A stretch of 64,000 bases of DNA from Orbicella franksi (taxonomy: Eukaryota): NCBI GenBank assembly GCA_964199315.1, contig OZ116707.1:3224001-3288000 (forward strand), in the 5' to 3' direction. Positions 52,511 through 55,500 of the stretch are shown here, piece after piece. Positions within the stretch are counted from its first letter, which is position 1. Every line of letters begins with the position of its first letter. Made by a program: the position numbers and the translations under genes. The notes under the pieces are model-generated. The model searched no databases, was not told the DNA's origin, and saw nothing but the letters and a program-made list of their open reading frames with translations.

Positions 52511-55500
52511 TTAATTTGTCAAAAGGTCAAAGTGTAGGTCAGGAAAGGATTCATACAGCTTATCCTTGAATTTCTCTACAACCTTTTTGGTGCCCTTCCC
52601 ATTGACATCCAAATGACATTTTTGAACTTTACCACTTGGTTTGCCACTGCCTTCAAGAGTATACACATCAGGGGGGTCATCTGATTGAACTCCATTGAAG
52701 AATCCATTTTTTAAGCAAAACCACATGCCTTTAAGCTGGTCTAGGAAAGAGTTTGGAACAGAATGTCTTTGGGTGGTGTGCTCATCAAAACCTTGTTTGG
52801 AGGAATATGCTTTCCTGACAGCTTTAAACAGATCAATACTAGACATTATCCTTTCACACATCTTCACTGAGGTATGTCCTAGAACGGAAAATTACAGACA
52901 TATTACATAAGTGAGGGTTTTTTTTCATATTTATAATAATTTCTATACTATGACAATGTTCTGACAACTACTTAAAGACTAGACATTTTAAGTGATAGAA
53001 TTTTTTTTTTTGATATTTCATGTTCAATAGGTGTCCACAACATTAAAAGAGAGAGTGCCTTGCTTGGCCATCTTTACACAAAAATAAAGTTTGATCAAAT
53101 GAATTCATTTTTGTAAGGTATTTGATTGGTGATGATAACGATAGTTATTTATAACATAGCTAGCAGAGGCTTGCAATCAAATACCTCCATTGTGCTCACT
53201 AAAGCATGAACCAGTTGTTAACTGGCAAATATATATGATTACTTAATTCATTCACAACTTATCTTTAGAACTGTGAGCTATATAAAATTTACAAAAGTTG
53301 ACATGACAAAAATTGTTACAAAGCTGAAATTTTCCCCCAAGAAGACATGCTCTTAAGTTCGCATGACATGTATCAATAAAACTGTTTCCTGCTATACGTT
53401 GTAGTCTGGGCAACATTACAAAATCCATGACGTCAGAGGGTAACAGTACACCTTTGCCTGCAAATGTTGAGGGCCATCCTTATGTATTAATTATGAATTA
53501 TAACAAATCACTTACTCCCTTAGGAAATCAATTAGTTAACTTTGTTTTCCTTGAACAAAATTAACTGTTTTCCCTCAGGACCAGTCATTTAGTATCAAGT
53601 GTATTCAACTGAGTGTCAAATTTGAATTAATTTCATCACTCAGACAATTTTCCCATATGATTAGGGCACTATTGTGCTGGTTGGTCAGGACCACCTGTCA
53701 TATCATTACAACTGAACTGCTCTTACCTGACACATAGATCTTGAGTGGCTGAACTATTTCAGCTTCCACAAATGCATCCAATTCCATGGCTCCCCCTTTC
53801 TTTCCAGAAAGGTTAACTGCACAATTCTTTTGAAGCAATTTGCGGAATGCCAAAGGCCATTTTCCAAGAAAATTGACAACATGAGCAAATGTTTCTGTGA
53901 AATAGTTCTTGAAATTCAAATGAGCATAAGTGGGCAACTGCAGAATATAGCAAACCTCTCTTGCTTGGCCTAAAACATGTGATGTGGAGATGTCAAACAG
54001 TTCAAGGAGAGGCCCATAGTACAGGAACATTCTTGAATAGTACCTGAAAGCAACATTCCTTTCACTTGATTGCTCTATCCATTTAATGAATGCATCATAT
54101 AGCACATCATTGTGGTTCCCTGACTTTCTGAGGCTAGCTGACCTATCTCTCGGACCTGGATAACAGTCACTTTTAGCAAATTCAATTACAGCAGCTATTC
54201 CATATGACCTAGCACAGTCTTGTACTGCTTCTTTTATTCGATCTTGATTTCCTGTCTCAACCTTTTTCTTCTTGAAAACATCAGAAATGAGCTTTGGTCT
54301 CTTCATTACCTTGTTGGCAATGTAGTGGAATCCACCAGGTCCTTGTTCTTTAAAACAGGCTTCACAAAGGTATCCTTTTGTATGCAGATCACCTGGTATT
54401 ATCCCTGCCCACTCGTAAGCTGAAGCTCTCCCCATCACTCCCCTGATAGTTTTGCAGGTGCCTTGATCTCCTACTAAGCCTGTAACAAATCCTTCCGAGT
54501 TACGATCCACCTGTGATACTGGTTCATCAGATCCATCCCTGATCAAAATATCTGTTCTCTTAAAGGAGTCATCATAACCTGATATGTCATCATCCTCATT
54601 ATCTGACATTTGTGGGTTCAGTACTTCATATATTTCAGCTAGTTGCATTTGTTCTGCAATTTTAAGTGGGCATGGAATATTTGTGAACAAAGGCCCTCTC
54701 ACACAAGCTCTGTGATTAACCAGAAGTTCACAGACCTGTTTGTTTTTCTTTATCACTGCTATTACAAGAGGTGTTGCACCACACATTTCTTTTGCATTTG
54801 GGTTGCAGCCAGCTTGCATAAGACAACAAGCAAGGTCATAGTTTCCTTGTTCCACAGCCATATGTAACAAGGTACGGCCAAGATGGTCGCTAACATCCTG
54901 CAGGTTAATGTTGCTCAAGTCTTGAATAACACGTTCCACTGAATCACTTTGTTTAGATTCCCACACCTTATCTGCAATGTTATTATACAGCTCAGTGAAA
55001 ACTTGATCACACTTTGCAAAGCGACTCTTAGCTTGCTGAATAGTTGTTCTATTTTCATCATCAGAATCACCTGCAAGCTCATCATCACCATCATCATTTG
55101 TGGTTAACTCTTGAGAACTGTCAAACTCTTTTTCTGTTGCCTCCAAGGTTTTTAATAAGTCAGCCATTTCATCTCTGTGTTCATACAACATGATTAAAAA
55201 CTCAACATGTTCCCTGGCTTTTTTAAGGCTGAAATTCCTGTTCCTTTTGTCAAATGGCAATGTTTCCAGTTTGTCCACTTTATTGCAAAGGCCAAATTCC
55301 TCAGCAAACTGATCTAGAATCACACTTGTTCCTGTAAAGGTTGCATTATTTTCTAATGACAGAGGTAATATGTGAACATCAGTCTTCACTGTGGACATAC
55401 TTGTGTCAAAAATGTTTTCAATGCTGGGAATGCTCAGTTTCACATTCTGTTGGGTACAACCATCAGCATTTGACAACCACTGGTTACATTGTTTTTCATT

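Follow-up and report, generated by a model that had tools for sequence, protein, structure and literature searches.

Why should a cut-and-paste transposase carry ankyrin repeats within its catalytic region, and what might they do there? The question arises from a locus of the coral Orbicella franksi (NCBI GenBank assembly GCA_964199315.1, contig OZ116707.1, positions 3,224,001 to 3,288,000 of the forward strand), a stretch of 64,000 nucleotides referred to throughout as the window. On its minus strand, an open reading frame (ORF) of 1071 amino acids (aa) at 53698-56913 forms the middle exon of a three-exon gene, the transposase gene of an AcademH-like DNA transposon. Coordinates are positions in the 64-kb window and residues follow the numbering of the 1071-aa ORF, with mature numbering equal to the ORF number minus 8. 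The ankyrin repeats probably form a functional accessory domain that defines its lineage, in the transposase of an AcademH-type transposon that was active recently. As far as the searchable literature shows, an ankyrin module housed in the catalytic core of an AcademH-type transposase is new.

The ankyrin module and the fold that surrounds it

The ankyrin domain is encoded at 54619..54939 on the minus strand (ORF residues 659-765), with an N-terminal cap to which the last part of the helix before it contributes, from residue ~632 (~55020). Residues 656-736 match the Pfam families Ank (39.6 bits, cut-off 21.1, E 4.7e-10), Ank_2 (36.9 bits, cut-off 27.3) and Ank_3 (31.6 bits, cut-off 22.3). The structural model described below gives the segment a block-mean predicted local distance difference test (pLDDT) value of ~88-97. 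In an exhaustive structural comparison, residues ~632-770 align with solved ankyrin domains (Z 13.9, 124-128 residues, root-mean-square deviation (rmsd) 3.0-3.6), and the segment reaches a template modeling (TM) score of 0.74 against 124-residue designed ankyrin repeat proteins (DARPins). The predicted fold consists of four repeats, in which two canonical ones stand between an N-cap, partly supplied by the helix before it, and a degenerate C-cap. The original prediction, made from the sequence, had placed the repeats at 54620-54895 (ORF residues 674-764) and counted three. The peptides it quoted are in frame and the repeats themselves are supported by both Pfam and fold, but the model raises their number to four.

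The surrounding fold was read from a second AlphaFold2 (AF2) model, m5e3c8ad48cad, which covers residues 242-1071 and was built with 132 aligned relatives and fragments (pLDDT 83.9; predicted TM score (pTM) 0.81). It replaced a first model of the full ORF, built with 13 sequences, in which pLDDT was 55 and the core was left unmodelled. The second model arranges its elements in the order β1-β2-β3-α1, module, β4-α2-β5, helical domain, and final helix, which is the order of an RNase H-like transposase core. The first half of this fold (55294..55827, minus strand) comprises β1 (363-372, with D367), β2 (389-399), β3 (512-519), and α1 (526-540), whereas the second half (54394..54483, minus strand) comprises β4 (811-815), D816 (54466-54468), α2 (817-829), and β5 (836-840). 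Directly after β5, and just outside the latter span, D842 and H844 of a PGDLH motif are invariant. An all-helical domain (842-1029) then occupies the classical insertion-domain site and is followed by the last helix (1045-1062), both within 53728..54390 on the minus strand; this helix carries D1046 and E1050 (53764-53766). No variation is seen among 13 homologues at D367, D816, E1044, D1046, and E1050, and acidic residues stand at all three places expected of a DDE/D enzyme (β1, after β4, and the last helix). The putative catalytic triad is D367/D816/E1050. Its first two members lie in the LLDN (D367, 55813-55815) and GDQ motifs, 449 residues apart, where the original prediction had correctly located them.

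Between these two conserved aspartates, in the loop that joins α1 to β4, the model shows a nested module of ~230 residues. Two helices with an acidic disordered loop between them come first, the ankyrin domain of four repeats follows, and another acidic linker closes the module. The two long helices (563-599 and 625-656; 54946..55227, minus strand) open the module and enclose the acidic loop (600-624, within the same span), which has pLDDT <50 and in which 10 of 25 residues are aspartate or glutamate. The second linker (766-805; 54499..54618, minus strand) is partly disordered, with a short helix at 771-780 and disorder at ~787-795, and 12 of its 40 residues are acidic. Acidic linkers thus flank the repeats on both sides, as had been noted earlier, and the module lies near the putative second catalytic aspartate in the sequence. 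The earlier placement of the repeats in the catalytic region, between the aspartate motifs, likewise holds, but their assignment to the insertion domain does not: the module lies in the α1-β4 loop, upstream of the second aspartate. The site used for insertion domains in hAT, P, and RAG-type transposases, between β5 and E1050, is taken up by the separate helical domain at 842-1029.

The regions around the module belong to an RNase H-fold transposase of the Academ/DUF6589 type, in agreement with the original prediction, as indicated by the order of the fold and by matches to the P element transposase and to DUF6589. The Pfam family DUF6589 (PF20231) matches near the C-terminus with 44.4 bits (cut-off 27), a match limited to profile positions ~268-361; the N-terminal half is too diverged for a profile match. 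Among the best 50 solved structures, the sole match that is not an ankyrin protein is the Drosophila P element transposase (6p5a_A; Z 13.2, 277 residues, rmsd 4.5), which covers model residues 104-828 and thereby both halves of the split core. AlphaFold DB clusters returned ankyrin-less DUF6589 proteins of 472-630 aa that cover model residues ~8-829 (best E 3e-9, TM by hit 0.45-0.56), together with ankyrin-bearing relatives (E 5e-30) and a PHD-finger relative. A cnidarian DUF6589 cluster in the ESM Atlas (616 aa, no ankyrin family listed) aligns over 452 residues with a TM of 0.62 (model 49-814). Foldseek searches against the PDB and Swiss-Prot models gave ankyrin proteins only, and an ESM Atlas feature search gave no usable match (best score 0.80).

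One reading of this architecture keeps the module's function within the transposase. The two helices and the ankyrin domain would mediate contacts between subunits or dock back on the core, with the acidic linkers possibly acting as DNA-like auto-inhibitors. With 830 residues and several domains modelled, a pTM of this size suggests that the domains hold defined mutual positions. Nested domains help other RNase H-fold transposases to assemble and to handle DNA; in the P element transposase, the closest fold among solved structures, such a domain binds GTP. The linkers here are also strongly acidic. Ankyrin domains, however, self-associate less often than they bind other proteins, and we consider this reading rather unlikely.

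That the module is an insertion can be seen by comparison with ankyrin-less members of the same family. DUF6589 yields 86 matches in this genome. The best of these, L030, is a 598-aa ORF that lacks any ankyrin match and whose DUF6589 match spans profile positions 15-410. Its motifs were lined up with those of the window protein by eye. GTGDNWD of L030 corresponds to LLDNVNI of the window protein at β1, SIIVSLPIINANE to HILPLSLENNAT at β3, AFAGDQLT to LVGDQGTC at β4, PVMWHTK to PGDLHTK at β5, NIEDDLAQEIS to MELDAFVEAEI on the last helix, and SFPDI to SFPDL in the tail. The distance from the first to the second aspartate is 449 aa in the window protein and 188 in L030, whereas that from the second aspartate to the glutamate is approximately alike (234 and 258 aa, respectively). 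The α1-β4 linker accounts for 268 aa in the window protein and 37 in L030. In another relative, P0076, the ankyrin repeats stop just ahead of DUF6589 profile position 136, which corresponds to β4. These linker lengths and aspartate distances, together with the boundary in P0076, argue that the module was inserted into the α1-β4 loop.

The D-x3-E motif of the last helix is kept in ankyrin-less DUF6589 families, as is a related SFPDI tail. Alignment of the family profile with the single L030 protein by hhalign is weak (E 0.014) and confined to the C-terminal region. With filters off, a hidden Markov model of the C-terminal half of the ankyrin-bearing lineage detects this genome's ankyrin-less DUF6589 ORFs no better than at E 1e-3 to 0.1, and a search with residues 240-600 alone did not find ankyrin-less relatives. 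A profile search with the full-length alignment was swamped by ankyrin-3 and similar proteins.

Other members of the superfamily carry further domains. An ankyrin-less DUF6589 transposase at L036:294-1571 (G000 C8:30973942-30975219) has an N-terminal zf-AD domain (39.7 bits), which represents another accessory domain within the same superfamily. A separate ankyrin-less family (L033:1486-2616 and L034:1504-2550) has an insertion of ~85 aa with a C2H2-like motif, CRFPGC...HELSH, recognized by eye. This insertion sits in the helical domain between β5 and the glutamate-bearing helix, and Pfam does not call a zinc finger in it.

Conservation of the ankyrin domain and its possible partners

The ankyrin block is conserved to the same degree as the catalytic blocks. 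Across 12 homologues, mean pairwise identity is 0.53 in the ankyrin block, 0.53-0.71 in the catalytic blocks, and 0.23-0.30 in the acidic linkers. In an exhaustive search, 21 of the 22 relatives with at least ~170 residues upstream of β4 match Ank_2, and nearly all of the first 30 database relatives combine Ank with DUF6589. Relatives in this coral and in octocorals retain the block even where identity falls to 36%, and an amphioxus relative has a degenerate, sub-threshold ankyrin match of 22.8 bits. The segment is therefore not peculiar to the window copy, consistent with the original expectation; all genomic copies of the gene carry it as well.

These figures bear on the idea that the segment was picked up from a host gene and travels with the transposon as a functionless passenger. 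Transposons do capture host fragments, and the borders of the module are poorly conserved, disordered linkers. The block is nevertheless in frame, is conserved like the catalytic motifs down to 36% identity, is retained by 21 of 22 relatives, and persists in degenerate form in amphioxus, all of which make a passenger very unlikely.

Residue conservation within the repeats points toward binding. In DARPins, the target-binding face is formed by repeat positions 2, 3, 5, 13, and 14. We take the concave binding-face positions of repeat 1 in the window protein to be H677, L678, R680, E688, and Q689. All five are invariant or nearly so among proteins that are 36-55% identical overall, and E688 is present at ≥90% in the wider set of 22 relatives. 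Conservation of these concave-face residues suggests that the ligand is conserved too. Since ankyrin domains typically bind proteins, the domain probably serves here as a protein-docking platform for such a ligand.

One candidate ligand is encoded by the element itself. A RecQ-like helicase ORF at 46132..47733 on the plus strand, convergent with the transposase gene, matches the Pfam families DEAD, Helicase_C, RecQ_Zn_bind, and RQC, and relatives at 36-39% protein identity have a convergent RecQ-like gene 1.8-3.2 kb downstream of the transposase. The ankyrin domain could bring this helicase into the transposition complex. In the lineage, these distant relatives included, the transposase gene always comes with a helicase gene; ankyrin repeats bind proteins, and the concave-face residues are conserved. 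However, at least 26 other DUF6589 loci of this genome have a convergent helicase match within ~6 kb. No ankyrin repeats were found in the DUF6589 families checked directly, and a genome search gave no ankyrin match near the remaining helicase-paired loci. Pairing of DUF6589 with a helicase where ankyrin repeats are absent indicates that the helicase partnership is older than the module and independent of it. Co-folding of the module (555-805) with the RecQ-like ORF scored 0.00 in a run with no controls, which speaks neither for nor against a contact. Recruitment of the partner RecQ, as originally proposed, is neither supported nor refuted by these data, and we judge it unlikely; the other suggestions of the original prediction, a host factor as partner or a part in target choice, may hold.

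Some of the helicase-paired loci are clustered. Three identical DUF6589-plus-helicase loci (L046-L048; G000 C7:5932939-6057086) follow one another at 60.3 kb spacing (5935134, 5995426, and 6055754), in what looks like a tandem segmental repeat bearing an ankyrin-less Academ-like element. A looser series lies on C14 at 16.17-17.32 Mb.

Because ankyrin-less elements of the same superfamily also carry a helicase, the ligand would more likely be a host nuclear or chromatin factor, or another subunit or region of the transposase, than the RecQ-like helicase. The likely role of the domain would be to tether or regulate the transposition complex, through target choice, assembly, or auto-inhibition, and not to take part in catalysis itself. 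In its most specific form, the proposal is that the element represents an undescribed AcademH sublineage in which an ankyrin domain between the first two catalytic aspartates tethers the complex to a host nuclear factor, thereby steering or gating integration. This is offered tentatively, as a possibility that falls well short of being probable, although a conserved host factor for tethering or gating holds much of the probability left beside the rival explanations. One relative carries an automatic 'BARD1' name, which prompted the idea of a histone-tail reader resembling BARD1 or TONSL. That idea was set aside as speculation: no BARD1 or TONSL chain is among the listed matches of the sequence or fold searches against solved structures, and the one BARD1 match in an ESM Atlas search is weak (TM 0.18-0.19).

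Several points weigh against the interpretation of the repeats as a working accessory domain of a transposase. The catalytic triad was assigned by topology and conservation, not by clustering in three dimensions, and the Z of 13.2 for the P element match is close to the range in which the tool issues warnings for helix-rich models. What the ankyrin face would touch is proposed from the conservation of residues. Few other DUF6589 families were checked directly for ankyrin repeats, the remainder being judged from the lack of nearby matches. Neither exon junction of the transposase gene is backed by an RNA read, with splice joints in none of 21 poly-A reads.

The host element, its copies, and the transposase gene

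The transposase gene lies within a copy of an AcademH-like element on the minus strand at 37915..57660, where similarity to 6-7 other copies stops sharply at both coordinates. The canonical element consists of 37915-38498, 44664-47766, and 51729-57660, and its length is taken as ~9.6 kb because two nested insertions occur in the window copy alone. The first (38499..44663, 6.2 kb) splits the region upstream of the helicase ORF, and the second (47767..51728) spans 4.0 kb; both are missing from the other copies. The element is bounded by a perfect 18-bp pair of terminal inverted repeats (TIRs), the left at 37915..37932 on the plus strand (CTCTCTCCTCCGCAGAGG) and the right at 57643..57660 on the minus strand. 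These are flanked by a 9-bp direct repeat, the target site duplication (TSD) CCACTGAGC, with its left copy at 37906..37914 and its right copy at 57661-57669.

At least 8 copies of the gene, 98-99% identical, are spread over different chromosomes of the 497 Mb genome. Of eight gene copies, five are full length with no stops in the main-exon ORF, two have stops, and one is internally deleted; the ankyrin module is retained in the full-length copies that lack stops. TSDs of 9 bp, differing in sequence, flank six copies (the window copy and those on C11, C13, C14, and C5, together with that on C3, which has one mismatch). A more distant relative, at 36% protein identity, is present as two identical 11,087-bp copies in different flanks, also with 9-bp TSDs, and its terminus, CACTCTCCTCCGCAGAGGCTT, is approximately the same as that of the window element.

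Such copies speak to the alternative that a transposase gene was domesticated and is now a host gene. The long ORF is intact, and relatives are entered in databases under 'BRCA1-associated RING domain 1', 'ankyrin repeat-containing', and similar host-like labels. Against this stand the multiple near-identical copies on different chromosomes, which share the same TIRs and have different 9-bp duplications, and the two identical copies of the distant relative in different flanks. Domestication is therefore extremely improbable. Conservation of the block, together with young copies bounded by TIRs and TSDs, makes both the passenger and the domesticated-gene readings unlikely.

Two further observations concern the ends and copies of these elements. 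The terminal sequence CxCTCTCCTCCGCAGAGGC is common to elements whose transposases are 36% identical (L028:7405-18491 and L029:7405-18491), an unusually strong conservation for transposon ends. The internally deleted copy on C3 (G000 C3:3997808-4000098; L008, L009) lacks transposase residues ~144-455, including β1 and D367. It keeps both ends and its TSD with one mismatch, and is a candidate non-autonomous derivative.

TSDs measure 9 or 10 bp in AcademH and 3-4 bp in AcademX, and the longer TSD together with a helicase distinguishes the former from the latter (PMC10045372, citing Kojima 2020). TSDs in the AcademH range were found here at the six copies and at the two copies of the distant relative; a helicase gene lies within the element, as the RecQ-like ORF is located between the TIRs, and the TIRs themselves are perfect over 18 bp. 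DUF6589, the helicase gene, and TSD length together place the host element as AcademH-like, an assignment made from these features and not by comparison with reference Academ sequences.

The spliced transposase has 1176 aa, which reproduces the length given by the original prediction, through the joins 57286-57229 / 56831-53727 / 52878-52511, with splice sites read by eye. All three exons lie on the minus strand. Exon 1 (57229..57286), from a reading of the sequence, encodes MAEAREEALDISFQEMSLE and the first base of the next codon, ends at the donor G|GTAAAT, and joins in frame at ORF residue D28. Exon 2 (53727..56831) encodes the N-terminal domain, a coiled region, the RNase H-like core, the ankyrin module, and the helical domain. 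Exon 3 (52511..52878) encodes the C-terminal tail with its ESFPDL motif and matches the uninterrupted C-termini of P0010, P0011, P0014, and P0016. In two of these homologues, P0011 and P0014, the second junction is read through and the intron is absent.

Coral metatranscriptome runs contain the window's own sequence. One poly-A run gave 0 reads at the transposase gene, and another gave 21, mostly at the 3' end. Metatranscriptome contigs cross the transposase introns, which may reflect DNA or unspliced RNA. Near the N-terminus of the protein, window positions 56500-56790 (ORF ~54-135) encode a small conserved alpha/beta domain (FVESPGK...LATRAV...) that reached a pLDDT of ~85 even in the poor first model and has no Pfam match. 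It may be an end-binding domain.

Significance and comparison with known transposases

To our knowledge, Academ is among the least studied cut-and-paste superfamilies, with no member characterized biochemically or structurally. The element described here offers a young, multi-copy family with sharp ends and five full-length copies free of stops in the main-exon ORF, as well as a confident fold model that places the predicted catalytic residues. Its conserved accessory domain forms a discrete unit at an unusual site of the RNase H fold and is open to removal or mutation. Binding of a host chromatin or repair protein by the ankyrin face, if it occurs, would give a DNA transposon a novel route to selecting targets or sensing the state of the cell. 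A tether to a host factor would provide the transposase with its own means of targeting or regulation, for which no counterpart is known among DDE cut-and-paste transposases. If the element does represent an AcademH sublineage with an ankyrin tether, it would also lend itself, being nearly intact, to the first biochemical work on an Academ transposase.

Public protein sets already hold the Ank plus DUF6589 architecture, under names drawn from the ankyrin part. Entries of this family named 'BARD1', 'ankyrin repeat-containing', and 'CNPV229 ankyrin repeat' are better read as transposon genes. In the searchable literature, which did not take in Kojima 2020, no description of ankyrin repeats with an Academ or DDE transposase was found, and within that literature the original statement that no cut-and-paste transposase with a nested ankyrin module is known holds true.

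Known transposases resemble the window protein in different respects. The hAT, Transib, and RAG1-type families share a helical domain between β5 and the glutamate-bearing helix (842-1029 here), whereas the ankyrin module of the window protein occupies a second, different site, the α1-β4 loop; the families themselves did not turn up in the fold searches. The P element transposase has a nested domain that binds GTP and lies after the second aspartate, produces an 8-bp TSD, and has a THAP DNA-binding domain. Neither a THAP nor a GTP-binding domain is among the Pfam matches of the window protein, and its TSD is 9 bp, not 8. What it has in common with the P element transposase (PDB 6p5a) is an RNase H-like core split by a large nested domain, and the resemblance to the P element and THAP9 is one of fold only.

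Ankyrin-less DUF6589 proteins (PF20231; L030 and fungal and cnidarian entries) are closer. They share the overall fold, the convergent helicase neighbor, and a set of motifs comprising DN on β1, GDQ after β4, HTK after β5, D-x3-E on the last helix, and the SFPD tail. They differ in the short α1-β4 loop, which contains no ankyrin repeats, and sequence similarity to them is marginal. Animal AcademH transposases reportedly have a PHD finger as their accessory domain, not ankyrin repeats. With AcademH elements (Kojima 2020, Mobile DNA, cited in PMC10045372 and PMC10799480), the window element shares TIRs, 9-bp TSDs, a helicase gene beside the transposase gene, and animal hosts, while the ankyrin domain set on a helical stalk inside the catalytic fold sets it apart.

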